Sequence record: OR699282.2
Direction: 5' to 3' (one strand)
Length of the DNA: 64,000 nt
This document shows, piece by piece, positions 2,097-16,481 of this stretch (positions are counted from its first letter, which is position 1; each line of letters starts with the position of its first letter). The position numbers and the translations under genes were made by a program. The notes beneath the pieces were generated by a model. That model had not been told where the DNA came from, did not search any database, and worked only from the letters and a program-made list of their open reading frames with translations.

Positions 2097-2190
2097 GTTT
2101 AATAAAGTACTTGCATACTAAGTTAAAACAAGTATAATACTTTCTATCAGGTGGGGAATAGTTCCCCACTATAATTAAGAGATTAATTTT

Positions 2191-2424: not shown

Positions 2425-2506
2425 TACTTGCAAACTAAGTTTAAAAGCGTATAATGTTTTACATCAGGTGGGGAATAGTTCCCCACTATATAAGAGGATT
2501 AAAAAA

Positions 2507-2746
2507 ATGGCAAAATCAAAAATGTTCTTAGGTCACAAAAACAAAACTCATTGGAATGTAAGCCTGTGGATTAATAACGATGAGGGATTGTATCGGTTGG
2601 CCCTGGATTTTATTAACGACAACACTAATCGCAATGATGCGGCCCGTCATATGATGTTATTTTTAGAACAGACTGGACAAGATAAAACACCGGACGGATT
2701 CAAATATAGCACTACTGCGATCCGTGCGGCGATGGTTGGAATGTAA
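2507..2746 (+). CDS. conserved phage protein, GHKNKTHWNVSLWINN family; paralog of 4620
   Basis: SD GAGG, paralog shares identical 3' DNA. Confidence 0.85.
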   Translation: MAKSKMFLGHKNKTHWNVSLWINNDEGLYRLALDFINDNTNRNDAARHMMLFLEQTGQDKTPDGFKYSTTAIRAAMVGM

Positions 2747-2836
2747 TAGAATAGAATTTATTTAAAGTACTATCGCAAAAAATGATAGTACTTTATAATA
2801 GTGTTTTATTCATACACCAACGATAAGGGCAACAGC

Positions 2837-3103
2837 ATGAATATTAAGTATTTTGCGACGCGTGAACAAGCTCGGATCGCCGCACGCCAGGACGGGGCAA
2901 CGTTTAAAGATATGGGCGTACAATCGGAACGTGGTAAACGTTGGGCCATTGTAAAGCGTAGTACCGCCAGATCATTACAGTACTGGTTAGCGGCCTTAAA
3001 AAGTCCCGATAGTGTATCGCGTCGAGTGGTAGAAATAAAGCTCGACCGAAAGGGCAACCGCGTGACCGTGTACCGTACTAAAAAGATTGCAGTACTTGAA
3101 TAA
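2837..3103 (+). CDS. hypothetical protein, paralog of 16016
   Basis: Shared motifs FATRExAR..FKDMG..RWA and DRKGNRVTVY. Confidence 0.8.
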   Translation: MNIKYFATREQARIAARQDGATFKDMGVQSERGKRWAIVKRSTARSLQYWLAALKSPDSVSRRVVEIKLDRKGNRVTVYRTKKIAVLE

Positions 3104-3190
3104 AAAGTACTTGCAAACTAAGTTTAAAAGCGTATAATGTTTTACATCGAGAGCGGGAACACTTCCCGCCTATAACCTGGAGTAATAAAA

Positions 3191-3421
3191 ATGACTAATA
3201 TGTATATGACTGAAGTTAAAACCGTAAAAGATACTACCACAAATAAAGTTACTTACTTACAGCGGATCTGTGGTGTATGGCAACGTATCAGCAAATCAAA
3301 GTACTTTAAATTAACATCATATGCAAACCGTTCGGATTCATTCAGTACTGAAATAAAAGGTAATAAAGTACACCAATATGGCACTTATTATTATTATAGC
3401 CTGGACGCGATTGCAGTATAA
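3191..3421 (+). CDS. hypothetical early protein
   Basis: Promoter 3111, SD GGAG. Confidence 0.8.
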   Translation: MTNMYMTEVKTVKDTTTNKVTYLQRICGVWQRISKSKYFKLTSYANRSDSFSTEIKGNKVHQYGTYYYYSLDAIAV

Positions 3422-3451
3422 GCAGTTTACAAATCTTTACAATTGCCGGTA

Positions 3452-3535
3452 TTGACTTATTTTGTCAGTACTGGCATAATGTATTCATTGGCAGATAAGC
3501 CGTAGCCCATAGGGTGCGGGAGTGTATCTATAGAA
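3452..3535 (+). ncRNA. candidate small RNA cassette copy 4
   Basis: TTGACT-17-CATAAT, core AGCCCATAGGGTGC 3504-3517, GGGAGTGTATCT. Confidence 0.5.
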
Positions 3536-3544
3536 AAATTAGTT

Positions 3545-3624
3545 TAGTATAGTTACAATTGTGCACCCGGTGGGTTAGCTGTTGTCATGTGGTATATTAT
3601 GCCAGTACTTGATAATGCTGTCAA
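3545..3624 (-). ncRNA. candidate small RNA cassette copy 5 (convergent with copy 4)
   Basis: TTGACA-17-CATAAT (3624-3596), core AACCCACCGGGTGC 3576-3563. Confidence 0.5.
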
Positions 3625-3705
3625 TACTTTTTTTTACTATTCAGTACTGAAAACTATTTTTAAAAAGTACTTGCAAACTATGTTTAAAGGCGTATAATGT
3701 TTTAC

Positions 3706-3780
3706 ATCAGGACGGGGAACGAAATAAGTAACTTCCCGTTAAGTAGCCCAGGAGTAAGGCACACGAAAAACTCCCCTGAT
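3706..3780 (+). ncRNA. candidate three-way-junction RNA, copy 1
   Basis: Behind promoter 3671; ATCAGG/CCTGAT closing stem, ACGGG/CCCGT and GGAG/CTCC arms; no ORF before the next promoter at 3789. Confidence 0.5.
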
Positions 3781-3848
3781 AAAATAGTTTGACAAATGTT
3801 TTTAAAAGCGTATAATACTTACATCAACTACTGAATGAGGGTTACAAA

Positions 3849-4537
3849 ATGAAAACTATCACTACTACTACTTTCGTTATGGATTTTTCTGAATTGAACG
3901 CAGAACAAAAAACGTCAGCTATCGAACTGGTTCGGGAACGTGAAAAAAACTCAAACGACATTTTTCTGAATTGAACGCAGAACAAAAAACGTCAGCTATC
4001 GAACTGGTTCGGGAACGTGAAAAAAACTCAAACGACAATTATTTTTCTGAAAGTGAAATTGAATACTATAAAGAAACAGTACTACCGGAATATGGCATTA
4101 ATGACGCTGAAATACAATTCAGTGGTTTTTGGTCCCAGGGTGACGGTGCATCAATCAGTACTGACCACGTTGACGCAGTGAAGTTTTTACGCAAGGTAAG
4201 AGCATTAACTAAGTATCGCTCAATCCGTCACTTGCTGAATGAAGATGATTTGGCGATGAGTGTAAAGCGTTCGCACTCCCACTACTCGCATGAGAATACT
4301 GTAAGCGGGTACATTGAATCGGCTTACACTGATTTAACCGCAAAACAAGAAACGTTAGTTAATGAGCTTGAGGAACTACTCACTGAAACTATTCGTGAAT
4401 TGTCCCGCAAGTTGTACCGTGATTTAGAGAATGCATATGAGGATCAATTCACTACTGAAAACATTACGGCACTGATTGAGGGTAACGAGTATCAATTCAA
4501 TGTTATTGATGGCGTAGTGGAATCAATCGAATATTAA
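3849..4537 (+). pseudogene. FSGFWSQGDGA-motif phage/plasmid protein, frameshifted by a 77-bp tandem duplication
   Basis: ATG 3849 with SD GAGG; 3884-3960 repeated at 3961-4037; reading stops at ..NDIFLN*, rest is in ORF 3971-4537. Confidence 0.65.
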
Positions 4538-4619
4538 TTTAAAAAGTACTTGTTTAAAGGCGTATAATACTTTATATCGAGGCGGGGAGTGGTTCCCCGC
4601 TCAAACGAGGATTAAAAAA

Positions 4620-4859
4620 ATGGCTAGTACTAAAACTTACAACGGGCACAAAAACAAAACTCATTGGAATGTAAGCCTTTGGATTAATAACGGTGAGTCA
4701 TTGTATCGGCTTGCTCAAAGTTGCATCGCACAAAGTAGAACTAAAGATATTGCAGCGGAATGTATGTACCGCAGATTAAAAGCCAACGGTACTACTACAA
4801 CGCCGGACGGATTCAAATATAGCACTACTGCGATCCGTGCGGCGATGGTTGGAATGTAA
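4620..4859 (+). CDS. conserved phage protein, paralog of 2507
   Basis: GHKNKTHWNVSLWINN and TPDGFKYSTTAIRAAMVGM identical. Confidence 0.85.
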   Translation: MASTKTYNGHKNKTHWNVSLWINNGESLYRLAQSCIAQSRTKDIAAECMYRRLKANGTTTTPDGFKYSTTAIRAAMVGM

Positions 4860-4916
4860 TATTCAGTACTGAGATAATGGCGGGTAATAGTTCCCGCCTT
4901 TACTGAGGGTTATCTA

Positions 4917-5204
4917 ATGAGTAAAGTAATAAAGTACAATGTGTTAAGCAAATCATTGTCTATCAGTGAATGCACCGATGGTTTTTGGATGTACGATGAA
5001 ACGCGTGGCATGAATTTAGCTATGCGTGCAAAAACTGCTGAGGCGGCGTATATTCAAGCACTGGAATACTACCAGGAACGTTTAAAGGAAGTAGAAGAAG
5101 ATTATAAAAGCCTCAAAGCGAAAGTAGATCATTTCGTCGGTCAATTCGTGGAAGACAACGACGAGGACGGGCACTACTGCGACCGTTGCGGATCTTACAG
5201 TTAA
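4917..5204 (+). CDS. hypothetical protein
   Basis: ORF with SD GAGG. Confidence 0.8.
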   Translation: MSKVIKYNVLSKSLSISECTDGFWMYDETRGMNLAMRAKTAEAAYIQALEYYQERLKEVEEDYKSLKAKVDHFVGQFVEDNDEDGHYCDRCGSYS

Positions 5205-5221
5205 GTACTGAGGATTATCTA

Positions 5222-5425
5222 ATGAGTGATTTAATCGACCGCATCAAAGAGCTTGAAGAAAAAGAATTGCAGTTGATCGGGTTACGGAATAAAGTATTCC
5301 ATGATTTAGGTGGCTTTATTAATGCCTGGGATAGTGGCGATCCTGATGCGTTACCTGCTAACCGCCAGGCGATGATCAATGATGTGCGTGGTGTCTTTGA
5401 GTATGTTTTAAAGCAATTAAATTAA
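5222..5425 (+). CDS. hypothetical protein
   Basis: SD GAGG, start moved to MSDLI. Confidence 0.75.
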   Translation: MSDLIDRIKELEEKELQLIGLRNKVFHDLGGFINAWDSGDPDALPANRQAMINDVRGVFEYVLKQLN

Positions 5426-5511
5426 AAAAGTACTTGCAATTAGTTTTCAGTACTGTATAATGGTTTACATCAAAGGGAGAAATGGTTCTCCCTGGTAATG
5501 AGGAAAATAAA

Positions 5512-5733
5512 ATGGCAAATATCACTACTCTTTCCCAACTGGAAGCACTGGTTAAATCTATGCGGGAACATGCCGACAAAATCGGCGTACAAGATCCAGC
5601 CGTTTGCTTCTGCGACGAATTGAATGATGATACCCTGGTAATAGCAGAAGTCCAGGACGTTTCTAACTATTCCTCGCGTTACACTGGCGGCGTAGCAAAT
5701 AAAGGTGACTTCTGTTTATACCTTACAAAATAA
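5512..5733 (+). CDS. hypothetical early protein
   Basis: Promoter 5434, leader hairpin, SD GAGG. Confidence 0.8.
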   Translation: MANITTLSQLEALVKSMREHADKIGVQDPAVCFCDELNDDTLVIAEVQDVSNYSSRYTGGVANKGDFCLYLTK

Positions 5734-5764
5734 CAACGCGGGGAGATAATAACTCCCCGTTACT

Positions 5765-5868
5765 TTTTCAGTACTGAATCATTTAATAGACGGATCTCGG
5801 CACCCGGTGGGTTAGTGACTGTTTCGTCTTGATGTAGTAATTATGCCAGTACTGGATGCACTTGTCAA
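5765..5868 (-). ncRNA. candidate small RNA cassette copy 6
   Basis: TTGACA-17-CATAAT (5868-5840), GAC-GAAACA-GTC hairpin, core AACCCACCGGGTGC 5813-5800. Confidence 0.5.
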
Positions 5869-5975
5869 CAACTATTTTTCAAATACTTTTTATTAAAATA
5901 CTTGCTAATAGTTTTTAAACGCGTATAATGTTTTGCATAGGGGAGCGGTTCCCCTGGTAACTAAGGAATAAGAAA

Positions 5976-6212
5976 ATGCTTGAACAAATCAAATCAACGT
6001 CTGCTAATGTAACGGGAACGGTATCACACTTTATTGGTGATGAATCGCGGGGCGTTCCCTATTGTGCTGTACATGTAAACACTGAGGGTAACTACTGGTT
6101 TACGGTTTACGGATCATATTCATTTGGACGGCCAGGGCATCAAAAAATTCTGGATAAAGTACAGCCAACGGGTAAAAATATCACGGCTGAAATGTTTTAT
6201 AAAAAATCATAA
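5976..6212 (+). CDS. hypothetical early protein
   Basis: Promoter 5902, SD AAGG. Confidence 0.8.
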   Translation: MLEQIKSTSANVTGTVSHFIGDESRGVPYCAVHVNTEGNYWFTVYGSYSFGRPGHQKILDKVQPTGKNITAEMFYKKS

Positions 6213-6296
6213 AGTACTTGATAATAGTTTTTAGTACTGTATAATATTTTACATAGCACGGGGGAGCGGTTCCCCCTGGTAACTAAGGATAATCAA

Positions 6297-6596
6297 ATGA
6301 AAATTGCAATCATCGCCCTGGCTTTATCTGTTTCCTCTTTCGCTGTTAATGCGTCGTTAGATGTGAGTAGTGAAAAATTCATTCAGTGCACTGTTGCGAT
6401 GACCAATGAAAGTACGGGCGAGATTGTTTTAAAGGATTTAGAGATCCAGCCACAAGCATTTAAAAACGGGCCGTTCCATGAAGAAGACGAAAACGGTAGC
6501 ACAACCATTTACTATGATGCCAGTACTAAACGCGGTTCGGTCACGGTTATGGATACTGAGAAAGTAACTCATACAGGCGTTATTAATTGCCGTTGA
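6297..6596 (+). CDS. hypothetical exported protein
   Basis: N-terminus MKIAIIALALSVSSFAVNA looks like a Sec signal peptide; two Cys. Confidence 0.75.
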   Translation: MKIAIIALALSVSSFAVNASLDVSSEKFIQCTVAMTNESTGEIVLKDLEIQPQAFKNGPFHEEDENGSTTIYYDASTKRGSVTVMDTEKVTHTGVINCR

Positions 6597-6617
6597 TTGA
6601 TACTACGGGGTAACATC

Positions 6618-6848
6618 ATGACAGCACGAATAGTTTTACTTAACGAAAGCAGTACTACACAACTACTTAACGCCGTGCATTATGATATTGAAACGAGCGT
6701 TAATCTTATCAGTACTGTCGTACTGTTGGACACTGGAAAGGTCGCCAATGATAAAGCGATTGCAGGTATACTAACGGATCTTGAGCCTGGTAGCAGTGCA
6801 CCAATAACGTTAAATGGTAAAGTGTTTAACATTTTACTTACTGATTAA
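6618..6848 (+). CDS. hypothetical protein
   Basis: ORF followed by terminator. Confidence 0.7.
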   Translation: MTARIVLLNESSTTQLLNAVHYDIETSVNLISTVVLLDTGKVANDKAIAGILTDLEPGSSAPITLNGKVFNILLTD

Positions 6849-6854
6849 GTACAT

Positions 6855-6876
6855 AGCCCACCTGGTGGGCTTTTTT
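6855..6876 (+). terminator. intrinsic terminator
   Basis: AGCCCAC-CTG-GTGGGCT then T-tract. Confidence 0.85.
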
Positions 6877-6965
6877 GTTTTTGTAGTATCGTAGTACTGA
6901 GATACTTTGAAAATAGTTTTAAAAAAGTAGTTGACATTACCGCAGAAAAGCGTAGAATGTATTAC

Positions 6966-7038
6966 ATCAAGACGGGGAGCACTAAGTAGACCGCCAGTAA
7001 GTCGAACGAAAAACTGGACACGTCGAGAAAACTTTGAT
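6966..7038 (+). ncRNA. structured leader, variant of the three-way-junction RNA
   Basis: ATCAAG/TTTGAT closing stem, shared TAAGTAG and CCAG-TAAG-N4-ACGAAAAA-CTGG modules. Confidence 0.4.
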
Positions 7039-7081
7039 ACACTAATAAACGTAAACTAAACTTTAATTGAGGATTTATAAA

Positions 7082-7564
7082 ATGGCTAATGTAAAATCAT
7101 TCATCAAAGCACTGGTAGCAAATGAAACTAACGTCGCGGCTGAGATCCTGGCTGAACTGGATAACGATACCATGAAAGCGGTACGCAATAATTTTAACAT
7201 CGCGTACAGTACTGCGAAAGAACTACAAGCAAATAAAGCGGCAGAAATTGAAGCGGCAAAGGCGGCCCGTGAAGCAGAACTACAAGCAACAATCGAAAGT
7301 ATTCAGGCGGCAGTAGTTGGATTGGATCTGGAAGTAGTTACAGAGATGGCACAAAAAGCCCTGGCGGTTAAGTATGGGGAAGACAAGCCAGAAGTAAAAG
7401 CCAAAAAATGGATTCAGGAACGCGTAGCGGTAGTACTGGACAACGGGGAAGAATATCTGATTCCGGTGCGTGGTAACTGTATTGCGGTAGTACTGGACGC
7501 GATTAACTCCAGTGGTATGACTCGCGAGGAATGGATCGAAGCTCATCGCAAAGTTGAAGCATAA
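7082..7564 (+). CDS. H-NS/StpA-like protein (diverged)
   Basis: Helical N-terminus, Ala/Glu-rich central helix, C-terminus LDNGEEYLIPVRGNCIAVVLDAINSSGMTREEW aligns by eye to H-NS [34 protein letters not shown]. Confidence 0.6.
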   Translation: MANVKSFIKALVANETNVAAEILAELDNDTMKAVRNNFNIAYSTAKELQANKAAEIEAAKAAREAELQATIESIQAAVVGLDLEVVTEMAQKALAVKYGEDKPEVKAKKWIQERVAVVLDNGEEYLIPVRGNCIAVVLDAINSSGMTREEWIEAHRKVEA

Positions 7565-7585
7565 CAATTAAAGTACTGAATCACT

Positions 7586-7612
7586 AGCCCACCTTAAACG
7601 GTGGGCTTTTTT
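7586..7612 (+). terminator. intrinsic terminator
   Basis: AGCCCACC-TTAAAC-GGTGGGCT then T-tract. Confidence 0.85.
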
Positions 7613-7849
7613 GTGTTTATCGTTTACCAGGCCACCAGCACCGCCTAGAAACGATTCTAACGCATTAAACTGATTATCTGATGCATTGCCCTAGCTGGTG
7701 GCGTTAAGGTCGTTGTAATGCGATTGAGAGCGTTTAAAGTATTTTGCAAAAAGTAATAAAAAGTACTTGCACGATTAAGAGATTAGCGTATAATGTTTTA
7801 CATCGAGAGGGGGAAACGGTTCTCCTTCCAAATCAAAGGAATCAAAACA

Positions 7850-8077
7850 ATGGCTATTATCATTACTCGCGTATCTGGTACTACTGGCAACGAACAAGTA
7901 GTTGCAGTCATTACCAACAAGGAAGGTGCGGAATTGCAAAATGCAATGAATACCTGGGCCGTTAATGAGTTCGGTCAGTGGGCAAGTGTAGCATACATTG
8001 AAACCTATCAAGTGCCGTCGATTAGTTTAACTGATTTGGGCGTTGAGCGTATCCTTTGCCTGGATGAATTAAATTAA
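7850..8077 (+). CDS. hypothetical early protein
   Basis: Promoter 7767, SD AAGGA. Confidence 0.8.
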   Translation: MAIIITRVSGTTGNEQVVAVITNKEGAELQNAMNTWAVNEFGQWASVAYIETYQVPSISLTDLGVERILCLDELN

Positions 8078-8162
8078 AAAAGTACTTGCAAAGTAAATCG
8101 AATAAAGTATAATACATTACATCAAGGGGAGAAATGATTCTCCCCACTACAAGGAAACTAAT

Positions 8163-8306
8163 ATGAAAACTTGTCAATGTGGTCAGAAATCTATTACTGG
8201 TTTAAAGCGGGGCGTTGCTCTTTGCCAGTACCATTATAATTTACAAGTATGGGGTAAAGAATGGGCCGACCAGGTGGAAGCAGCAAAGAAAGCAAAAAGT
8301 AAGTAA
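8163..8306 (+). CDS. small Cys-containing protein, 47 aa
   Basis: MKTCQCG..LCQYH; promoter 8086 and SD AAGGA; below the ORF track cutoff. Confidence 0.7.
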   Translation: MKTCQCGQKSITGLKRGVALCQYHYNLQVWGKEWADQVEAAKKAKSK

Positions 8307-8397
8307 AAATATTATCACAGTACTATTGACATAGTTTGATAGTACTGGCATAATAGATTTTATCAAAACGACACATATTAATTTAAGGAATACCAAA

Positions 8398-8721
8398 ATG
8401 GCTAAAACTATCATCAACACCGTTTCCCTGGCTGCAATCCGTGCAATCAATGTTGACGGTAAACGTTGGACTGATTCATATGGCAATACTTATCATTCTT
8501 GTCATGTAAGCGTTGAACTGGATAACGGTTTGAATGATCTGGCGGTTGAATCATTTACTTATGGCTATGAAGATGCATATCAACAAACGGCGTTTGATCT
8601 CTTAAAGGAATCAGTAGACGGGCTTGATACTGTTGAAACCTCCCTTACTCGTTTATGTAATGATTTGTCTATCCCGTTGCATTGTACTGTACAGAATGTT
8701 AAACGTAAAAAAGATCTTTAA
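8398..8721 (+). CDS. hypothetical protein, paralog of 15606
   Basis: RWTDSxGNTYHSC..FTYGY..VKRKKD shared. Confidence 0.85.
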   Translation: MAKTIINTVSLAAIRAINVDGKRWTDSYGNTYHSCHVSVELDNGLNDLAVESFTYGYEDAYQQTAFDLLKESVDGLDTVETSLTRLCNDLSIPLHCTVQNVKRKKDL

Positions 8722-8801
8722 TTAGCTTTACTTTATGCAGATACTTTGATATAGTGTCTGCATAGGGGAAAGAAATTAAATTAACTTAAGAGGATAGTAT
8801 A

Positions 8802-9071
8802 ATGAAAAATATCAGTACTTTAATCGATGCAGGTACACATGTTCGTCGGTCTATGGTTACAACCAGTACTACAAAACAAGTAGCAAGCGGTTATCTTGTA
8901 TTTGTGCACGATGGAAAACTCCTGGAACGTTCAATCAATTTTGATGTTAAAAACAATTGCCGTTTTATTATCTTTAAGCGTGAACAATATAAAATCGATT
9001 TACCAGCGAAGCCCATAAGCGGGGCGTACAACGTGCAATCATTGTTTGAGCGTCAACCATACACCTATTAA
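8802..9071 (+). CDS. hypothetical protein
   Basis: SD GAGG. Confidence 0.75.
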   Translation: MKNISTLIDAGTHVRRSMVTTSTTKQVASGYLVFVHDGKLLERSINFDVKNNCRFIIFKREQYKIDLPAKPISGAYNVQSLFERQPYTY

Positions 9072-9122
9072 TCAAAACATCGTTAGCGGTCGATTCAGGC
9101 CGCTTATATTGGGGATTATACC

Positions 9123-9395
9123 ATGAACGTTAATCAAGTACTGAATGAGATCGAAAGCATCATTAAACCGATGAAGCGTACTGATGCTATGTTAACACCG
9201 GAAGAATGCCGCCTTTATGAGCGTTACAGCGTCGAACAAGTCCAGGCAATGGCTATGGCTACCCCAGCCGTTAAACCGCCTGAGAATGCGTTACAGGACG
9301 TTACAGGGGATTATATCATTAATCCAGTACTAGGGAAGATGGCTGCAATCACCGAAGATCAACAAGACTACTTAAGCCAGTACTTAAAAGGTTAA
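9123..9395 (+). CDS. hypothetical protein
   Basis: SD GGGG. Confidence 0.7.
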   Translation: MNVNQVLNEIESIIKPMKRTDAMLTPEECRLYERYSVEQVQAMAMATPAVKPPENALQDVTGDYIINPVLGKMAAITEDQQDYLSQYLKG

Positions 9396-9400
9396 TTAAT

Positions 9401-9610
9401 ATGCTTACTGTACAGGATAAGATCGACATCTTAAAGGTTAATATGTATGTGATTGATGCAGTACCTGGTAAAGTATTTGCATACGATGACACTACTGTAA
9501 GCAATTTCTACTATAGCCAGGACGTGGGGGATCTTTCTGTACAGTCGGTTATTGAAAACGTAGTTAATGCAGCGTATGAGCATTTACTTTCAAATAGTAC
9601 TTGCAATTAG
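9401..9610 (+). CDS. hypothetical protein
   Basis: Follows 9123 closely. Confidence 0.7.
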   Translation: MLTVQDKIDILKVNMYVIDAVPGKVFAYDDTTVSNFYYSQDVGDLSVQSVIENVVNAAYEHLLSNSTCN

Positions 9611-9679
9611 TTTTTAAACGCGTATAATGTTTTACATGAAGGGGAGAAATGATTCTCCCCACTAATTAAGGAATATGAA

Positions 9680-9826
9680 ATGAAAGCATCAAAAAAGAGT
9701 AATACTAAGAAAGCACGTTCAACCTTAGATGGGGTATTCCCTTTACGTTTCGTTGATGAAGTAGTTTCCTACCCGCCGGGCCTTACTCCTGAGATGGTAG
9801 AAAGTTTGCGTAAATCTAAAAAATAG
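9680..9826 (+). CDS. small basic protein, 48 aa
   Basis: Promoter 9601, SD AAGGA. Confidence 0.65.
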   Translation: MKASKKSNTKKARSTLDGVFPLRFVDEVVSYPPGLTPEMVESLRKSKK

Positions 9827-9908
9827 TACTTGCAATTAGTTTTTAGTACTGTATAATAGTTTACATGAAGGGGAAAACGTTCCCCTTACACCTAACGAGG
9901 AAAGTATA

Positions 9909-10160
9909 ATGGAAACAATTTTAATCAAAGACACTGCTACTACTGTAACTTATGATAATGATTGCATTATCCCAGGGACTGAGTACGGCGAACGTGTACC
10001 CGTTCAAGTAGAGATTGATACCACATACATCGACAAGGCTGACCAGTGTATCACTATTGTAATTGGTGAATATCGTTTTCTACCAGAAGAGATCCAAAAA
10101 TGGCAGAATATGATTGACCGTGCGAAATTAGTCGCACAAAGTTTAAAATACAAAGTTTAA
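9909..10160 (+). CDS. hypothetical early protein
   Basis: Promoter 9830, SD GAGG. Confidence 0.8.
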   Translation: METILIKDTATTVTYDNDCIIPGTEYGERVPVQVEIDTTYIDKADQCITIVIGEYRFLPEEIQKWQNMIDRAKLVAQSLKYKV

Positions 10161-10246
10161 AATAATACTTGCAATTAGTTTTTAGTACTGTATAATGTTT
10201 TACATGAAGGGGAGAAATGATTCTCCCCAATAACAGGAGAAACAAA

Positions 10247-10399
10247 ATGAAACAATACAACGCTCGGTTTGATGTTACTATCGGTAACGGCAAAGGTCAA
10301 TTCTCTTTCAGTACTCGCCGCAGTTATACAGAAAACTTCCTGCGTAATTGTGCACTGACCGCCGCTCAAATTAAACATTATTTTCAGGCTAAAAAATGA
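10247..10399 (+). CDS. small hypothetical protein
   Basis: Promoter 10169, SD AGGAG. Confidence 0.7.
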   Translation: MKQYNARFDVTIGNGKGQFSFSTRRSYTENFLRNCALTAAQIKHYFQAKK

Positions 10400-10485
10400 G
10401 ATCATTAGCTTATTACAGTTCGGCCCTGGTCGGTGCATTGATCGCGGCGTTGTTAGTAACCTATCTATTCTTTATGGTGATTTAA
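10396..10485 (+). CDS. small membrane peptide, 29 aa
   Basis: ATGA overlap, single hydrophobic stretch. Confidence 0.5.
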   Translation: MRSLAYYSSALVGALIAALLVTYLFFMVI

Positions 10486-10629
10486 ATGAATCCAACAGGT
10501 TTAAACTATAAAAGTTGTTCGGCATTTACGAAAGCAAATAAAGCGAATGCACGTAAAGCGAAAGTACAGGAATACATCAAGCAAGGCATGACGCGAAAGG
10601 CGGCGATTCTAAAAGCTAAAAATAAATGA
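10486..10629 (+). CDS. small basic protein, 47 aa
   Basis: Abuts the previous stop; Lys/Ala-rich. Confidence 0.55.
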   Translation: MNPTGLNYKSCSAFTKANKANARKAKVQEYIKQGMTRKAAILKAKNK

Positions 10630-10638
10630 AAAAAGTGG

Positions 10639-10745
10639 TTGACTCCGGTCAGCCATTTTGCTATTATATATTCATTGAGAGATAGCTCACTAGCCCACAG
10701 GGTGCAGGAGTGTATCTATTGTATAATGTTTGAGTACTGAAAACT
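10639..10745 (+). ncRNA. candidate small RNA cassette copy 7
   Basis: TTGACT-17-TATTAT, TGAG-AGATAG-CTCA hairpin, core AGCCCACAGGGTGC 10692-10705. Confidence 0.5.
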
Positions 10746-10850
10746 ATTTTAAAGTATTTGATAAAAAGTACTTGCAAACTATCTCAATAAGCGTATAATG
10801 TTTTACATCGCAAGGGGAAACGGTTTCCCCTAGTAATAAGGAAACGAATC

Positions 10851-11192
10851 ATGACTATCTCAATTGCTCAATCTAACTTTGAAAATGAAATCATCGCCCA
10901 GGCACTGCGTTTAAATGATGGTCGGGCCGAAATCAATTACGGTTTCAATTCAGGCGGTTGTGAAAAATATCAGTACTTTGTAACGGCTGATGGCGGTGTC
11001 CTGGGTATCAATACAGTTATTGTAAACATCCAAAAAATTAATTTCAATGATCCAGACGATAGCCAGTTTTACATCACTGGCGTAGACGTGAACTATGAGG
11101 ATGACTCACTAACTGATGATCACACTGGTGAGCGGTTAGAAAGTGCATACGGTGAAGATGATTATCAGTCCGGTCCAGAAGATTTCGAATAA
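10851..11192 (+). CDS. acidic hypothetical protein
   Basis: Promoter 10772, SD AAGGA; motif VNYEDxxLxDDHTGERLESAYGED. Confidence 0.85.
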   Translation: MTISIAQSNFENEIIAQALRLNDGRAEINYGFNSGGCEKYQYFVTADGGVLGINTVIVNIQKINFNDPDDSQFYITGVDVNYEDDSLTDDHTGERLESAYGEDDYQSGPEDFE

Positions 11193-11287
11193 TATAAAAA
11201 AATAGTTTGACAATAGATTATAGTACTGTATAATAGTTTACATCAAGGGGAGAATAGTTCTCCCCACTAACAGAGAGAGAAAACAAA

Positions 11288-11500
11288 ATGGCTAATATCC
11301 GGTCGAAATTAAAAAATGCAAAACAAGTTTTATTTTCAGATCATGAATACTTTAATAAAGATATTACAGGAGTTACAAGTATCAAGGAAGTAAAAGAAAA
11401 AACCGGCGTTTTGTGTGATGTGCGATTAGTTGGAACATTTGGGAATAACGTGCTATATCGCTGCGGTGATTACAATTTTACACTGACTATCATTAACTAA
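11288..11500 (+). CDS. hypothetical early protein
   Basis: Promoter 11207. Confidence 0.75.
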   Translation: MANIRSKLKNAKQVLFSDHEYFNKDITGVTSIKEVKEKTGVLCDVRLVGTFGNNVLYRCGDYNFTLTIIN

Positions 11501-11582
11501 AAATATTATCACAGTACTATTGACATAGTTTGATAGTACTGACATAATAACTTTTATCAACTACACTACTAAGGAATTAAAA

Positions 11583-11762
11583 ATGGCTATCATCGCAAAA
11601 ACTGAAATCATCGGCCTGGATTCTATCATCATGACGTTTGAAGATCAAAAAGGTATGTATGTGGTTTCCTATGGTGATTATGTTCGGGAGTATGAAACGG
11701 TAGACGAAGCCTTTGAAAGTTACATTCGCCAGGTGAATAAAGCATACGACGACTACCGCTAA
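11583..11762 (+). CDS. hypothetical protein, 59 aa
   Basis: Promoter 11520, SD AAGGA. Confidence 0.75.
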   Translation: MAIIAKTEIIGLDSIIMTFEDQKGMYVVSYGDYVREYETVDEAFESYIRQVNKAYDDYR

Positions 11763-11861
11763 AATATATTACCAGTACTATTAAATCTATTGACAATGTT
11801 TGATAGTACTGTATAATAAGTTTTATCAACAGTAGTTAACTTAACCTAAGAGAGAAACAAA

Positions 11862-12005
11862 ATGATCGCACTGGATTCATTCATCGACGCAGTACTGGCA
11901 AAAACTGGCGAGGATCTGACCGCAGAACAATACGCAATGATCGAGCAATGCCAGCAAGACGGTAAATCGGTGAAAGATACTGTTAAGATTATCCGCAAGA
12001 TGTAA
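11862..12005 (+). CDS. hypothetical protein, 47 aa
   Basis: Promoter 11790, terminator follows. Confidence 0.7.
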   Translation: MIALDSFIDAVLAKTGEDLTAEQYAMIEQCQQDGKSVKDTVKIIRKM

Positions 12006-12011
12006 GATTAT

Positions 12012-12039
12012 AGCCCACTGGTTAACGCTGGTGGGCTTT
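12012..12039 (+). terminator. intrinsic terminator containing a Chi site
   Basis: AGCCCAC..GTGGGCT-TT; GCTGGTGG at 12027. Confidence 0.65.
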
Positions 12040-12110
12040 AATTCATTACCCTATACAATGCCAGTACTAAACCGTTTATCTCGTTAGAATGCGTTACAGG
12101 ACGTTTAACA

Positions 12111-12308
12111 ATGATTAGCATGAAATCAGTACAAAAACAAATAGAAACATTATCAAAAATTAAACGTAAACAGTACTCCTTAGAATATACAATCAATGGT
12201 AACTATCATCTAATGAAAGAAAATAATTTTATAGTCATTGATGAATCATTGCAAATCATTAGTATAGTACTGAAAGCATTAATCAATGACAGAAAAAAAT
12301 TAAAATAA
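12111..12308 (+). CDS. hypothetical protein
   Basis: ORF track. Confidence 0.6.
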   Translation: MISMKSVQKQIETLSKIKRKQYSLEYTINGNYHLMKENNFIVIDESLQIISIVLKALINDRKKLK

Positions 12309-12312
12309 ACTA

Positions 12313-12395
12313 TTGACAATATCATCCAGTACTGGCATAATACTTACATCAAGACGAGAACGTCACTAACCCATAGGGTGCACAAATGTAACTGT
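12313..12395 (+). ncRNA. candidate small RNA cassette copy 8
   Basis: TTGACA-17-CATAAT, GAC-GAGAAC-GTC hairpin, core AACCCATAGGGTGC 12368-12381. Confidence 0.5.
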
Positions 12396-12639
12396 ATAAT
12401 ATTGATCAAAAAATGATCTGATCAATACTTGATCAATTTGCGTAAAGTAGTATAATTCTATGCAGTTGGTTAGACGAAAGGTTATGATTAGTAGTGCAAG
12501 TGTATAAAAATTTTCATGGTGTATCGTTCCGCACATATGGGGATGAATATGTGGTATCATGTGGATTGGAAAAAGTAAGAACAAGTAATATTATTGTCGC
12601 ATTACAGTACTATAGTATTTTTATAATGAGGTTAAAATA

Positions 12640-12897
12640 ATGGCTGTAGGATTCGCGAAAGATGGGGCCGAACAAGACGAGATTAACGCAGTGATTCAGG
12701 CTGCCGTTAACCACGCTAGAAAGCAAATTAACGCACAAATAGAATCACTGATACATTGCCTCGACTGCGGCGATATAATCCCTGAGAAACGACGCCAGGC
12801 CGTTAAGGGATGTAAGTACTGCATAACTTGCCAGGAGGATCATGATAGTACTTTTAAACGTCCCCCGCGTAATTGTTGGCATAGATCTATGAGATAA
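12640..12897 (+). CDS. TraR/DksA C4-type zinc finger protein (YbiI-like)
   Basis: MAVGFAKDGAEQDEI N-terminus with acidic tip, CxxCG-x-IPExRRxA-x3-CxxCxxCQ. Confidence 0.9.
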   Translation: MAVGFAKDGAEQDEINAVIQAAVNHARKQINAQIESLIHCLDCGDIIPEKRRQAVKGCKYCITCQEDHDSTFKRPPRNCWHRSMR

Positions 12898-12961
12898 AAA
12901 GTAATTGACAGTACTGAAAGATAGTGTATAATGTTTTATATCTTAACTGAGGATAGTAATC

Positions 12962-13318
12962 ATGGGAATACAACATATCACGCGTACTACTGACAATGGC
13001 GAGATCACTGGCTATCAAGTACAGGGCAAAGTAGCACAATTGCAGTACTGGTTTGTTAAACGTGGAATCATTGCACCGGATCTTGATTATGACCGTGTAG
13101 CGTTTATTGATTCTCTTTATGTTGATCCTGATAGTCGGGGCAATGGTGAAGGTAACGAATTAATGAATGCCTTTATCGATGCCGCCGATGATTCAGATTG
13201 TATCATCTTAGAATGCGATACGGGAGAAGATAACGCCTTTAATCTTAAAGAATGGTACGAAGGTTTCGGATTCGAGGTATTGATAGATAGTGAATATCCT
13301 ATCATGATTTTATCATAG
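12962..13318 (+). CDS. GNAT-family acetyltransferase
   Basis: IDSLYVDPDSRGNGEG (motif A) and WYEGFGF. Confidence 0.85.
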   Translation: MGIQHITRTTDNGEITGYQVQGKVAQLQYWFVKRGIIAPDLDYDRVAFIDSLYVDPDSRGNGEGNELMNAFIDAADDSDCIILECDTGEDNAFNLKEWYEGFGFEVLIDSEYPIMILS

Positions 13319-13396
13319 TACTTGCATTTAGTTTTCAGTACTGTTATAGTACTTGCATCAAGGGGAAACATCTTCCCCTACTAAGAGGAAATAAAA

Positions 13397-13585
13397 ATGG
13401 AAAACTTATCAAGTATTTTAGTACAAGATGATTTCGGTAATCCTGGAAGTGCTATCATTGTTCGGGGTAATAAAGCAACATTTGTTATTGCTGGTGGACC
13501 TGTACAGCGTAGCATTAAAAACAATGCCGTTACTATTAATAATGTACGCTATCGCTTAGATAAAGAATTGATTCATAAACTGTAA
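13397..13585 (+). CDS. hypothetical protein
   Basis: Promoter 13322, SD GAGG. Confidence 0.75.
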   Translation: MENLSSILVQDDFGNPGSAIIVRGNKATFVIAGGPVQRSIKNNAVTINNVRYRLDKELIHKL

Positions 13586-13612
13586 TATTAATTTAATAGA
13601 GGATAACAATAA

Positions 13613-13936
13613 ATGTACATTCATACTACTATCACAAAGGAAGTCCGTTGCCAGTTCGAAAGTATTCCGGGCGTATGTTTCATCACTGGTACGTTTTCCC
13701 CTGGTGATCGTGATAATCCAGTACTGTTACAATTACGCCATCCATCATGGGATAAAGCATTTGATCTACCGTTGAATGAATTCGCAACTACTGCTGAAAA
13801 GTACATTAAAAATATTCGCGAGAATGATCGACTATTCATTAATGCTTTTAGTGATTCCGCGTTAAGCGAGATCCACGGCGTATTGGTTGCAATCATGGAA
13901 TCAATGCAGAAAACTAAATTCAAACAAGGTGAATAA
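13613..13936 (+). CDS. hypothetical protein
   Basis: SD GAGG. Confidence 0.75.
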   Translation: MYIHTTITKEVRCQFESIPGVCFITGTFSPGDRDNPVLLQLRHPSWDKAFDLPLNEFATTAEKYIKNIRENDRLFINAFSDSALSEIHGVLVAIMESMQKTKFKQGE

Positions 13937-14019
13937 AAACTATTGACAATGCAATCCAGTACTGTATAATAAGTTACATGAAGGGGAGAAATGATTCTCC
14001 CCACTGAGAGGAAAGAAAA

Positions 14020-14232
14020 ATGCAAGGTCAACTAATCGTTCGTAAATGGTCTGATACTAACGAAAAACCGTGGGATGTACAATACATCGGACCGGATGGG
14101 GTATCACGTTATCAGCCTGGCGTAACGCATAGTACTGAGCAATATGCCGCCGCTCACCGCGAACGCCTGTTAGAATCCATGAAACAGGGATACGGTGAAA
14201 AATTCATTCAAGATCATTGGCTGAAAGATTAA
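14020..14232 (+). CDS. hypothetical early protein
   Basis: Promoter 13943, SD GAGG. Confidence 0.8.
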   Translation: MQGQLIVRKWSDTNEKPWDVQYIGPDGVSRYQPGVTHSTEQYAAAHRERLLESMKQGYGEKFIQDHWLKD

Positions 14233-14249
14233 TAGAAGGAGTACAGCTT

Positions 14250-14342
14250 ATGCAAATGAATCCGATGATTATTGTTTTAGCTGTACTTATGATCATTCAT
14301 GCAATTGTAGAAGTATTAACGCAATCAGGAGTAATAAAATGA
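14250..14342 (+). CDS. small membrane peptide, 30 aa
   Basis: SD AAGGAG, hydrophobic. Confidence 0.55.
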   Translation: MQMNPMIIVLAVLMIIHAIVEVLTQSGVIK

Positions 14343-14512
14343 TTCAAGTAGAATTATCAGTACTGAAAGATCTGTTTTATCGGTTAGGTACTACTGGAGA
14401 GTATCCTAAAAGTGATACCGCAAAACTTTTTGTATCACTCGACTTATGGCAACGCGAACAATTAGTAATGTCCTGGCGTAAAGGTAAAGCAGATAGCGAG
14501 GTGAAAGCATGA
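14339..14512 (+). CDS. hypothetical protein, 57 aa
   Basis: ATGA overlap, SD AGGAG. Confidence 0.65.
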   Translation: MIQVELSVLKDLFYRLGTTGEYPKSDTAKLFVSLDLWQREQLVMSWRKGKADSEVKA

Positions 14513-14658
14513 AAGAATTCTTATTCGAAGTAGTGTTTCAAGGTGTCGGTAGTAACCAACTGATTCGCTCAAGTGGTTACAATGTTAACCAGGCATGGAA
14601 TAACATTAAACAAATGTACCCGAACGCTATCACCTATCGCAACCCGAAAGAAGTTTAA
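14509..14658 (+). CDS. hypothetical protein, 49 aa
   Basis: ATGA overlap, SD GAGG. Confidence 0.65.
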   Translation: MKEFLFEVVFQGVGSNQLIRSSGYNVNQAWNNIKQMYPNAITYRNPKEV

Positions 14659-14676
14659 AAATAATTGAAAAAGGGA

Positions 14677-14785
14677 TTGACTCCGGTCAGTCCCTTTGCT
14701 ATTATATACGCATAGAAACAAATCAGCCCACAGGGTGCATAAATGTATCTATTGTTAGCTGGTGGCTAGTACTGAAAACTATTTT
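14677..14785 (+). ncRNA. candidate small RNA cassette copy 9
   Basis: TTGACT-17-TATTAT, core AGCCCACAGGGTGC 14725-14738, Chi at 14758. Confidence 0.5.
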
Positions 14786-14830
14786 TAAAAAGTACTTGCA
14801 TTGTACTTAGAATCAAGTATAATGTTTTAC

Positions 14831-14903
14831 ATCAGGACGGGGAACGAAACAAGTAACCCCGTTAAGTAGTCCAGGAGTAAGACATACGAAAACCTCCCCT
14901 GAT
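14831..14903 (+). ncRNA. candidate three-way-junction RNA, copy 2
   Basis: Near-identical to 3706-3780, behind promoter 14796, no ORF. Confidence 0.5.
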
Positions 14904-14972
14904 AAAAAAGATTGACAATAGTTTGAAGTACTGATAAAATAATCACATCAACTACTGATAAGGAAACATAAA

Positions 14973-15248
14973 ATGCGGATTCTACTGACAGCTAACGAAA
15001 TCGAACAAGTACTGACTACTAACCTGGAAGACTGGAAACGTGAAGCAGATATCCAGGCGGTTCAATGGCTTAACGATAAGTTAACGCCGGATGACTTAAG
15101 CAAGATTGTAGATCCTCAATTCTACGAAGATATTCACGACACCGCGTTAAGCGTCGAGGATGTACTAGATAAGCACTACATTGATACTGATTTGCAGGTT
15201 TACGGTCGTAAAAACTTTATCACTATTCACGATATTTACAATAATTAA
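14973..15248 (+). CDS. hypothetical early protein
   Basis: Promoter 14912, SD AAGGA. Confidence 0.8.
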   Translation: MRILLTANEIEQVLTTNLEDWKREADIQAVQWLNDKLTPDDLSKIVDPQFYEDIHDTALSVEDVLDKHYIDTDLQVYGRKNFITIHDIYNN

Positions 15249-15334
15249 GTATTGACAAAGTATCTTAGTACTGTATAATAGTTTACATCGAGAGGGGGAA
15301 TGGTTCCCCTCCTAACTAAAAGAGAGAAATAAAA

Positions 15335-15517
15335 ATGGCTAAGTGCACTATCTGTAATAAAGAAATAGTATTAGTTCCAAGTGCCCGTGAACGTGCCGCT
15401 CGGTTCGGTGGCAAAGCGTCAGACTATACAAAAATGTTTACTGCCCATACAGCTTGCCAGGTAGCAAAACGTTCACAAGAAAGCGTAGAATTAATGCGTA
15501 AACTTTCCAAAAAATAA
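15335..15517 (+). CDS. small CxxC..H..C protein
   Basis: MAKCTIC..HTAC; promoter 15252. Confidence 0.75.
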   Translation: MAKCTICNKEIVLVPSARERAARFGGKASDYTKMFTAHTACQVAKRSQESVELMRKLSKK

Positions 15518-15605
15518 GTATTGACAAAGTATCTTAGTACTGTATAATAGTTTACATCAAGTGAGGGGAAACGGTTCCCCTCCTAACAAAGAGAGAGAAA
15601 TAAAA

Positions 15606-15929
15606 ATGGCTATGATCCTTACCCAGAAAGTGGAACTGAAAATTGTAACCTCCTTTGACATTAACGTTAATCGGTGGACTGATTCACACGGCAATACTTA
15701 CCACTCTTGCTACGTGTCTGCTTTAATTGGCGACCGCTGGGAAGACCTGGGACACGAAACCTTTACATACGGTTACGGTACACAAGGCGAATACACGGGC
15801 TTGGAGATCATTAAAGAAACCGTTATAGGTTTCAACCCGAAAGAAAAAGTTATTCACCGCATCGAGGAAGAGATCAACAAAGAAATAACAGTTCGCTACC
15901 ACGATGTAAAACGTAAGAAAGACATGTAA
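15606..15929 (+). CDS. hypothetical protein, paralog of 8398
   Basis: Shared motifs; promoter 15521. Confidence 0.85.
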   Translation: MAMILTQKVELKIVTSFDINVNRWTDSHGNTYHSCYVSALIGDRWEDLGHETFTYGYGTQGEYTGLEIIKETVIGFNPKEKVIHRIEEEINKEITVRYHDVKRKKDM

Positions 15930-16015
15930 TAGAATCCATTTAAAGTACTATTTGACATTGCCCAGATAGTACTTTATAATAGACTCTAACTTGTAGTACT
16001 AACTTAACTAATAGG

Positions 16016-16467: not shown

Positions 16468-16481
16468 ATAGGACAAACAAA

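Follow-up and report, generated by a model that had tools for sequence, protein, structure and literature searches.

Genomic context of the element

The window analyzed here, a 64-kb stretch of sequence record OR699282.2, belongs to an Asteriusvirus, a jumbo coliphage, and its terminal repeat of ∼21 kb carries three copies of an element of ∼75 nt, all on the + strand. Since there are three copies per terminal repeat, the packaged genome contains six. The pattern TAAGTAG..GTAAG..ACGAAAA matched the window three times, always on the + strand, compared to 0.00 matches expected (100 shuffles). A search of the 64 kb with a covariance model of the core scored the three copies at 52 to 53 bits (E ∼1e-12), with the runner-up reaching 8 bits. 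A preliminary description made from the sequence had located these stretches correctly. The features are as follows.

3671-3698, + strand: sigma-70 promoter of copy 1 (TTGCAA-16-TATAAT)
3706-3780, + strand: copy 1, three-way-junction type; P1 3706-3711/3775-3780, P2 3712-3718/3733-3739, junction UAAGUAG 3740-3746, P3 3751-3754/3771-3774; predicted pseudoknot G3746-C3747-C3748 with G3758-G3759-C3760 (central pair C-G); A-rich loop strand ACGAAAAA at 3763-3770
3789-3816, + strand: second promoter after copy 1 (consensus TTGACA-16-TATAAT), driving the gene that starts at 3849
6931-6958, + strand: promoter of copy 2 (TTGACA-16-TAGAAT)
6966-7038, + strand: copy 2, no P2 hairpin; clamp helices 6966-6971/7033-7038 and 6972-6974/7021-7023, UAAGUAG 6983-6989, P3 6994-6997/7014-7017; predicted pseudoknot G6989-A6990-C6991 with G7001-U7002-C7003 (central pair A-U)
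14796-14823, + strand: promoter of copy 3 (TTGCAT-16-TATAAT)
14831-14903, + strand: copy 3, three-way-junction type; P1 14831-14836/14898-14903, P2 14837-14842/14857-14862, UAAGUAG 14863-14869, P3 14874-14877/14894-14897; predicted pseudoknot G14869-U14870-C14871 with G14881-A14882-C14883 (central pair U-A, compensatory relative to copy 1)
14912-14940, + strand: second promoter after copy 3 (TTGACA-17-TAAAAT), driving the gene at 14973-15248

A sigma-70 promoter ends 7 nt upstream of each copy. By analogy with T7 A1, the copy 1 transcript would start at A3706, 7 nt past the −10 hexamer, and the starts predicted for copies 2 and 3 are A6966 and A14831; we thus infer that each copy occupies the 5′ end of a sigma-70 early transcript, from +1 onward. 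The motif was found at only 3 of the ∼35 early promoters in the window, and nearly all of the others are followed by a simple GC-rich 5′ hairpin.

As had been described, copies 1 and 3 each lie between tandem promoters, with no conserved open reading frame. The 31-amino-acid open reading frame at 3697-3792 starts inside the −10 hexamer and has no counterpart at copy 3, where there is a 2-nt indel and no + strand open reading frame; since the reading frame is not conserved, we rejected the possibility of an encoded peptide. Copy 2 is itself the 5′ untranslated region (UTR) of the gene at 7082-7564. The earlier assignment of this gene as H-NS-like did not hold, as no H-NS signature was seen with Pfam and PDB sequences; the gene belongs to phrog_27871, a group of unknown function.

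Conserved core and covariation

The stems originally proposed for copies 1 and 3 (P1 ATCAGG/CCTGAT, P2 ACGGGG(A)/(T)CCCCGT, and P3 GGAG/CTCC) and for copy 2 (ATCAAG/TTTGAT and CCAG/CTGG) could all be recovered. The proposal of a three-way junction in all three copies stands for copies 1 and 3; copy 2 is a two-helix variant and not a three-way junction, because the 3′ strand and the loop of P2 are missing. The P2 loop ACGAAA-Y-AAGTAA, previously thought to be conserved, is poorly kept among relatives.

The conserved core consists of UAAGUA-GNC, 1 nt, the P3 hairpin (4 to 6 bp), and a loop (A)UAA-GN′C-NN-ACGAAAAA. All three window copies fit UAAGUA-GNC...P3...UAA-GN′C-NN-ACGAAA, with N and N′ complementary and P3 paired. 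Across the family, the covariation of N and N′ includes each of the four Watson-Crick pairs (AU, 19; UA, 4; CG, 3; GC, 1; mismatch, 1), which indicates that the GNC and GN′C triplets pair with each other in a predicted 3-bp H-type pseudoknot. When scans required a non-A junction base, the complementary loop base was present in every true match. A local C-G/G-C pair within the P3 loop was considered and rejected, since its partner C changes to U or A without compensation, unlike the pseudoknot partner. Neither this junction-to-loop pseudoknot nor the presence of the core in T7 (see below) had been noticed in the preliminary description.

P3 was 95% paired, compared to 71% in shuffles, with double-sided changes in four of its five pairs, and the P2 stems diverge widely in sequence with their pairing always kept. 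In addition, the 3′ tail just past P3 is clamped to upstream sequence, the partner being the 5′ end of the transcript (forming P1) in the OR699282.2 phage and the P2 loop in T7-like phages. In the latter, the clamp constitutes a second pseudoknot that is 98.9% paired, all five of its pairs changing on both sides. As a stand-alone helix, P1 did not reach significance in the shuffle test (median P ∼0.16, with some start sites mis-assigned); its main support comes from the analogous, covarying clamp of the T7-like phages and from a single compensatory change that separates copy 2 from copies 1 and 3. G-U pairs are possible only when the + strand is the one that folds, and a fold of the minus strand, with which the G-U pairs are incompatible, gave no better result.

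The double-pseudoknot fold leaves ∼20 invariant bases unpaired. The initial suggestion that the RNA is structured and functional, its covarying stems carrying conserved unpaired nucleotides, is borne out by covariation in P3, in the pseudoknot, and in the second, T7-like pseudoknot. Its definition as a three-way-junction RNA survives in part: the RNA is structured, but the junction is a variant of its architecture and does not define it. The window copies and their relatives form a previously uncatalogued family of compact pseudoknotted RNAs, for which we propose the name T7 A1-leader pseudoknot.

Distribution of the element and the T7 locus

The core was found in Justusliebigvirus, Vequintavirinae, other jumbo phages, and ∼485 T7-like genomes, including T7 itself. 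The carriers fall into three groups of virulent phages that are unrelated to one another, all with hosts among the Enterobacterales, and in all groups the element is 5′-terminal on a sigma-70 early transcript. The T7 copy spans nucleotides 536 to 593 (+39 to +96 of the A1 transcript) in the interval from promoter A1 to promoter A2, and its 3′ strand overlaps the A2 −35 hexamer. Across Studiervirinae, Melnykvirinae, and Limelightvirus, the core is near-invariant, and no other stretch of the left-end control region of T7-like phages, the A1 and A2 hexamers included, is as well conserved.

A downstream promoter nearly always follows 3 to 50 nt past the element at variable spacing, and some members have none. 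Among the four contigs of the L093 clade, three (L093, L203, and L206) have a single promoter, the motif, and then an rrn-type boxA 15 to 40 nt further on, and the fourth (L208) has no boxA. In these three contigs, the motif stands where the boxB hairpin stands relative to boxA in rrn leaders. In T7-like phages, boxA lies 150 to 400 nt downstream of the element; a link to the ACGAAAC hairpin upstream of the T7 boxA was rejected, since this hairpin is inconsistently conserved. In phage Munch, a strong terminator closes the first gene behind the motif, and no promoter precedes the gene that comes after it.

As the preliminary description had stated, no known ribozyme or riboswitch corresponds to the element. 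Rfam 15 yielded no match at the gathering threshold over the whole window, and no relevant match was obtained at E values of up to 10 in positions 3400 to 15200, with riboswitch, ribozyme, sRNA, and leader families included, or at E values of up to 1 at the loci of T7, outra, and Munch. ARAGORN detected no tRNA or tmRNA genes in the window, and sequences resembling boxA (GCTCTTTAACAA-like) occurred there as chance-level near-matches only, none of them close to the copies. An origin in, or mimicry of, the host was rejected: among 185,579 species genomes there were 40 scattered non-enteric matches, consistent with chance, and neither the 5,426 E. coli genomes nor the 72,556 plasmids searched gave a match. 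The element was thus absent from the hosts, prophages, and plasmids scanned. In the literature found on its sequence, T7 leader RNA, Asteriusvirus transcription, and phAPEC6, the element is undescribed, and we found no description of an RNA structure at the T7 A1-A2 stretch; where the T7 sequence has been printed, it was treated only as a promoter spacer or template (PMC11863960, PMC7430646).

Proposed role as a leader RNA acting on host RNA polymerase

Our tentative best guess, with a probability of roughly 0.3, is that the element is a nascent leader RNA acting on elongation by host RNA polymerase. The RNA would fold on the nascent transcript and act in cis on the host elongation complex, via RNA polymerase or an elongation factor, so that a subset of early complexes would become resistant to pauses, terminators, and roadblocks. 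These complexes would then run inward from the leading genome end, across the next promoter and the early-gene terminators, in a mode like that of the HK022 put RNA or a boxB/boxA leader while being homologous to neither. The genes after the element differ and have no known function, and the element is therefore no gene-specific switch. It also counts in favor of this reading that several early genes in the window end at terminators and that the motif is found at 3 of the ∼35 promoters. The 5′-terminal position in three unrelated phage groups, the promoter that nearly always comes next, the boxA settings, and the gene order in Munch likewise point to transcription. As a precedent, the put RNA, of ∼70 nt with two stem-loops and a triplex, lies just downstream of PL and acts protein-free on the β′ zinc-binding domain (PMC9378689). 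It is suggestive that a CRISPRi block at A1 caused the greatest delay of T7 lysis with reporter output unchanged (PMC11863960).

Several observations weigh against an action on elongation. The window has no boxA. With a monocistronic layout, a strong terminator at 7586-7607, and a separate promoter for the gene that follows, the copy 2 unit has no obvious need for read-through. In T7, the A2 and A3 transcripts express the same genes without the element, and T7-like phages already possess a Nus/boxA system. Moreover, a dense double pseudoknot that leaves so many invariant bases unpaired is no less typical of an aptamer or ribozyme than of a polymerase-binding RNA. We know of no report of unusual processivity over decades of in vitro work with T7 A1 templates, although most of these end before the motif.

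Alternative explanations

A decoy or sponge, in which abundant RNA from the earliest, strongest promoters would neutralize a conserved enterobacterial RNA-binding protein (a nuclease, a defense effector or toxin, or a global regulator) or recruit a host protein to early transcripts, seems to us unlikely, though several features would fit it. The rigid fold displays invariant purine-rich unpaired segments, is independent of the gene downstream, and is arranged as a promoter-plus-RNA cassette placed before the gene's own promoter; the six copies per packaged genome and the lack of the element in hosts, prophages, and plasmids would also fit, and a phage RNA that mimics a type III antitoxin is an established precedent. 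However, the element resembles no antitoxin or sponge RNA in Rfam and is present in a single copy in T7-like phages, and since it has no terminator or defined 3′ end, it would stay in a long mRNA unless processed. We regard as rather improbable a riboswitch-like sensor, whose aptamer would bind a small molecule or ion reporting the host state and thereby adjust early transcription or the fate of the RNA. The H-type pseudoknot is compact, its third loop is A-rich, a clamp helix is present, and ∼20 unpaired bases are invariant, all of which recalls small pseudoknot aptamers like preQ1-I and SAM-II; nevertheless, there is no expression platform, with neither a fold-linked terminator nor sequestration of a ribosome-binding site, the downstream context varies (promoter, boxA, or plain UTR), the downstream genes provide no metabolic clue, and no Rfam riboswitch model matches.

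The inferred +1 base of copies 1 and 3 is already paired in P1, and such a paired 5′ end together with the knotted fold could shield early transcripts from decay that begins at the 5′ end (RppH, RNase E entry and scanning). That nearly all other early promoters precede a 5′ hairpin suggests 5′ protection as a general theme in the window; yet because a plain hairpin serves the other ∼32 promoters, protection alone leaves the extra module and its near-invariant unpaired bases unexplained. Given also that the transcripts from the second promoters do not contain the element and that RNase III separates the leader from the mRNAs in T7, we consider a stabilizing role to be quite doubtful. Self-cleavage to trim the leader would be reminiscent of the twister and pistol ribozymes, which share the double-pseudoknot architecture with a conserved unpaired core, but it is highly improbable: no ribozyme model matched even at an E value of 10, and we know of no reports of cleavage of natural T7 A1 run-off transcripts, which have long been used as size standards. 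Least of all do we favor an element acting as DNA, an UP element or protein site for the downstream promoter. Although T7-like phages have an A-tract where the proximal UP subsite of A2 would be, and the 3′ pseudoknot strand extends into the A2 −35 hexamer, we rejected this reading on the basis of the variable spacing (the next promoter is 3 to ∼50 bp away, and in some members there is none) and of the covariation in four helices, with G-U pairs on the + strand only, which fits RNA and not duplex DNA.

Implications

The T7 A1-A3 region is a textbook sequence and a standard transcription template, yet the 58 nt that are best conserved in it seem to code for a double-pseudoknot RNA that had escaped description. 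Three unrelated phage groups share the element and hosts, prophages, and plasmids lack it, which points to a host target that is conserved and is hit as infection starts. With due reserve, we can envisage a protein-free device, conserved from T7 to 370-kb jumbo phages, that takes effect in the first 100 nt of the very first transcripts and reprograms either a core host factor or the host RNA polymerase. If the elongation reading is true, privileged, unstoppable elongation complexes would drive leading-end expression and possibly transcription-powered entry; if the RNA is an aptamer or decoy instead, it would represent a new ligand-binding or immune-evasion class that went unnoticed in a heavily studied phage. 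The element may be relevant to the ways in which early transcription of phages evades pausing, termination, decay, or defense. Routine methods of T7 genetics and of in vitro transcription in the E. coli system allow its function to be tested directly. The family is a clean addition to RNA databases and calls for caution in synthetic-biology uses of A1-A3 fragments.

Comparison with known systems

Twister, pistol, and the exonuclease-resistant viral RNAs resemble the family in size (55 to 75 nt), in the pairing of a hairpin loop with the 3′ tail, and in a second short pseudoknot. They differ in that no model of theirs matched and in that the threading topology varies within the family, the jumbo-phage version being closed by an ordinary P1; furthermore, to our knowledge, E. 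coli has no 5′-3′ exonuclease. With preQ1-I, SAM-II, and guanidine-III, the family shares two short interleaved helices, a 1-nt first loop, and an A-rich third loop beside a short helix, but it has no Rfam match or expression platform and contains a clamp helix or second pseudoknot. The boxB-boxA(-boxC) leaders of lambda nut and rrn are likewise structured modules in an untranslated early leader, and the proximity of motif and boxA in three of four L093-clade contigs adds to the likeness. In contrast, boxB is a simple pentaloop hairpin, the window contains no boxA, and the element does not imply an N-like protein.

Homology to put was rejected, since the core covariance model scored no higher than 8 bits anywhere in the whole HK022 genome and the architecture also differs, put being a pair of long stem-loops in a V shape with a triplex and the family an H-type or double pseudoknot. 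Put belongs to temperate lambdoid phages and the family to virulent phages only, and put acts on polymerase, an action that is only proposed for the family. Nevertheless, HK022 putL and putR are similar to the element in their length of ∼70 nt, their position at the start of an early transcript made by host RNA polymerase, and their multihelix fold with tertiary contacts, as well as in occurring in more than one copy per genome, needing no phage protein, and being specific to a host lineage (PMC9378689).

Three copies at early promoters of the window

The preliminary description had reported an RNA element in three copies, and its sequences were confirmed at the following positions, each copy beginning 7 nt after the −10 hexamer of a promoter:

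3706-3780, +, copy 1; −10 hexamer TATAAT at 3693-3698, +
6966-7038, +, copy 2; −10 hexamer TAGAAT at 6953-6958, +
14831-14903, +, copy 3; −10 hexamer TATAAT at 14818-14823, +

Since this spacing is the same as at A1, a left-end promoter of T7 for host RNA polymerase, A3706, A6966 and A14831 are the probable start sites. A composite pattern occurs three times in the window, where no occurrence is expected, and a covariance model of the core (UAAGUA-GNC, one nucleotide and hairpin P3 with its loop) finds just these three sites in the 64 kb, at 52-53 bits, the next best scoring 8 bits. The element contains no ORF conserved across the copies and matches no RNA family in Rfam; no tRNA was found in the window. 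The proposed three-way junction stood for copies 1 and 3 and not for copy 2, which lacks the loop and 3' strand of P2, the hairpin before UAAGUAG, so that only the former two are three-way junctions. The gene after copy 2 (7082-7564) had been called H-NS-like, a label to be dropped because its product carries no H-NS signature.

The region 3400-7600 shares 98% identity with Escherichia phage BAU.Micro_ELP-22 and 85-96% with SP27, phAPEC6 and 121Q. Copy 1 sits at identical coordinates in OR699282.2, and in vB_Ec-M-J its equivalent lies inside the annotated direct terminal repeats, which in Asteriusvirus span ∼21 kb (PMC13070987). These relatives and the terminal-repeat annotation identify the window as the left end of a jumbo coliphage genome, its leading end, and with all three copies within the terminal repeat, each packaged genome would carry six.

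The first 20 kb (1651-20521) hold ∼35 strong, near-consensus sigma-70 promoters on the + strand, about one per small early gene; in nearly all cases the promoter is followed by ACATC(G/A)AG and a GC-rich 5' hairpin, then by a Shine-Dalgarno sequence and ATG. Examples of these promoter-leader units are as follows:

2428-2500, +
3111-3190, +
7767-7850, +
15252-15330, +

The initial transcribed sequence of these promoters, ATCGAGAGGG, is also that of T7 A1, which suggests a promoter-plus-leader module common to unrelated phages. P2 of the element corresponds to the generic 5' hairpin of the other early leaders, and the extra module, UAAGUAG plus P3, is present on only three of the ∼35 promoters. 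A second, consensus promoter lies immediately downstream of copies 1 and 3; copy 2 leads straight into gene 7082-7564 with no intervening promoter. The genes after the element belong to phrog_5162, phrog_27871 and phrog_14947 in the window and to phrog_871 (DUF7249) in phage outra, four mutually unrelated families with no assigned function.

The phrog_14947 gene after copy 3 (14973-15248) also follows the RNA module in Justusliebigvirus muut (L121, a locus of a relative, 1649-1921), and the RNA and this neighbor seem to have moved together between the 370-kb and 146-kb phage families. After copy 1, an exact 77-bp tandem duplication (3883-4037; 2.0 copies, 100% identical), which may be genuine or an artifact of assembly, shifts the frame of the phrog_5162 gene, which is intact in phage 121Q (203 aa).

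A second repeat family occurs at these sites:

3452-3530
10632-10720
12313-12390
14670-14750
17661-17745
19931-20000

Its promoter, mostly TTGACT-17-TATTAT, lies inside a 12-bp hairpin in at least 3 copies and is followed by a conserved leader of ∼50 nt that has no ORF and no Rfam match and contains CCCAYAGGGTGC (6 copies on the + strand versus 0.07 expected). Two of these repeats stand directly upstream of copies 1 and 3, creating triple promoter arrays.

Relatives in four groups of phages

Relatives gathered by BLAST and pattern scans fell into four phage groups, and public members number roughly 600. In Asteriusvirus, the type of copies 1 and 3 was found in 45 records. Searching with copy 2 gave 52 records: ∼37 were Asteriusvirus, and the remainder were partial matches to the core in other jumbo phages and in T7-like phages of Yersinia. 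The second group comprises the unrelated 145-kb Justusliebigvirus and Vequintavirinae (outra, muut, EmilieFrey, A7_1, A73 and LTH01) and the third other jumbo phages (Munch, Hallingskeid and a 366-kb IMG/VR contig). Unexpectedly, the fourth consists of T7-like phages. In T7 itself the core (nt 551-587) lies downstream of the start site of A1, at 498, and ahead of the −35 hexamer of A2, a placement that the T7 sequence printed in PMC11863960 confirms. A 55-nt T7 query matched 485 phage records, including Teseptimavirus, T3-like phages, Kayfunavirus, Klebsiella phages, Cronosvirus and Limelightvirus; all named hosts in this set are Enterobacterales, except for one "Enterococcus phage" record that is 94.5% identical to T7. 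In an alignment of 34 sequences, the core is the most conserved stretch of T7-like left ends, above the A1 and A2 hexamers.

True members score 43-67 bits in the covariance model, versus at most 24 bits for chance pattern matches. A damaged copy in phage CMSTMSU (L124, 1536-1571; 34 bits) lacks part of the 5' strand of P3, a deletion that may be a sequencing error, the record being flagged UNVERIFIED_ORG. Nothing similar was found in 5,426 complete E. coli genomes, in plasmids, in the HK022 genome or in a set of one genome per bacterial species, where 40 matches in scattered non-enteric taxa were consistent with chance.

A predicted pseudoknot closed by a clamp helix

Among 28 distinct cores, pairing in P3, the hairpin after UAAGUAG, reaches 95% (shuffled sequences, 71%), and four of its five pairs show double-sided changes (stems GGAG/CUCC, CCAG/CUGG, CCUG/CAGG and CUUG/CAAG). 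Its outer pair is often G-U, which is compatible with folding of the + strand only. The base after UAAGUAG and the base after loop UAAG form A-U in 19 cores, U-A in 4, C-G in 3 and G-C in 1, with one C·A mismatch. Since this covarying pair is flanked by invariant G..C and C..G pairs, we infer that junction and P3 loop form a 3-bp pseudoknot. As an unbiased test, metagenomes and IMG/VR were scanned for cores whose junction base was not A, the loop base being left free, and the complement was present in every true match, as follows:

L190, junction-loop pair G-C
L201, L202, L206 and L209, junction-loop pair U-A
L203 and L208, junction-loop pair C-G

The central pairs of the window copies are C-G, A-U and U-A.

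P2 is free to vary in sequence yet always paired directly before UAAGUAG. In T7-like phages, RNAalifold predicted a further helix between five P2-loop bases and five bases beginning one nucleotide past P3. It is 98.9% paired, shows double-sided change at all five pairs and exists in five complementary versions (GUCAA/UUGAC, UCAUC/GAUGA, UCGGU/ACCGA, AUUAG/CUAAU and UCAAG/CUUGA). In jumbo and 145-kb phages, the equivalent 3' tail pairs with a segment 5' of P2, forming P1 (AUCAGG/CCUGAU in the window; CGGC/GCCG, GACGG/CCGUC and AUCAA/UUGAU elsewhere). P1 as a stand-alone helix was not significant in a shuffle test; analogy with the T7-like clamp, and a single compensatory change that sets copy 2 apart from copies 1 and 3, make it a probable helix. 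Together, the P3, junction-loop and clamp pairings argue that the conserved unit is an H-type pseudoknot closed by a clamp helix, as judged from comparative sequence data. The claim of conserved unpaired bases on varying stems was borne out, with ∼20 near-invariant ones (UAAGUA, UAA and ACGAAAAA) in the conserved unit.

Possible action on host RNA polymerase

Any proposed role has to explain why the element stands only at the 5' end of early transcripts made by host polymerase, does not depend on which gene lies downstream, is confined to virulent phages of Enterobacterales, combines a complex fold with extreme sequence constraint and is followed by the next promoter at a variable distance. 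The likeliest reading, which we propose tentatively with a probability of roughly 30%, is that the element on nascent RNA binds the host polymerase during elongation, or a factor associated with it, whereby a subset of early complexes would become resistant to pauses and terminators. This would suit phages whose transcription has to start at the entering end and proceed inward past more promoters and terminators. Nascent HK022 put RNA acts on polymerase in this way (PMC9378689), and a CRISPRi block at A1 caused the largest delay of T7 lysis with reporter output unchanged (PMC11863960), a result compatible with our proposal. Three of four contigs of the L093 clade, phages of ∼43-44 kb, have the order promoter, motif, rrn-type boxA, first gene; L208 of the same clade has no boxA. 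In these three, the motif is without P2, boxA follows 15-40 nt on and there is no second promoter:

L093, 4113-4190
L203, 5388-5470
L206, 861-960

In T7-like phages boxA lies farther downstream of the element. In Salmonella phage Munch (L129, 4363-4403), a strong intrinsic terminator directly follows the first gene behind the motif, and the next gene starts 20 nt on without a promoter of its own, so that its expression would need read-through.

Upstream of boxA (CGCTCTTTAACAATCTGG), T7 (L183, ∼740-830) and the equivalent T7-like loci have a conserved hairpin pair; one such hairpin carries ACGAAAC in its loop, reminiscent of the motif's ACGAAAA strand, and is not kept in all clades.

Several observations speak against an action on polymerase. 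The window has no boxA, the copy 2 unit has its own terminator, the hairpin at 7586-7607, with the following gene separately promoted, and the A2 and A3 transcripts manage without the element. The dense fold also counts against the polymerase proposal, being as typical of aptamers and ribozymes. Among the rival readings, an RNA that acts as a decoy for a host protein, or recruits one, is unlikely; a sensor and a stabilizer of the transcript's 5' end are each somewhat less likely still, a ribozyme is very improbable and a DNA site scarcely credible.

Comparison with known RNAs

Membership in Rfam families, tRNA-like RNAs and put failed in every test, and membership among boxA-linked leaders failed for the window. 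In full-text literature, with older T7 work thinly covered, the only papers found were ones in which the T7 stretch serves as a promoter fragment. Given these failed memberships and a literature without a description of the element, we rate it as a new family of RNA with a new fold, although the older T7 literature may hold an earlier description. With put, nut, small pseudoknot aptamers and double-pseudoknot ribozymes, the element has only general principles in common.
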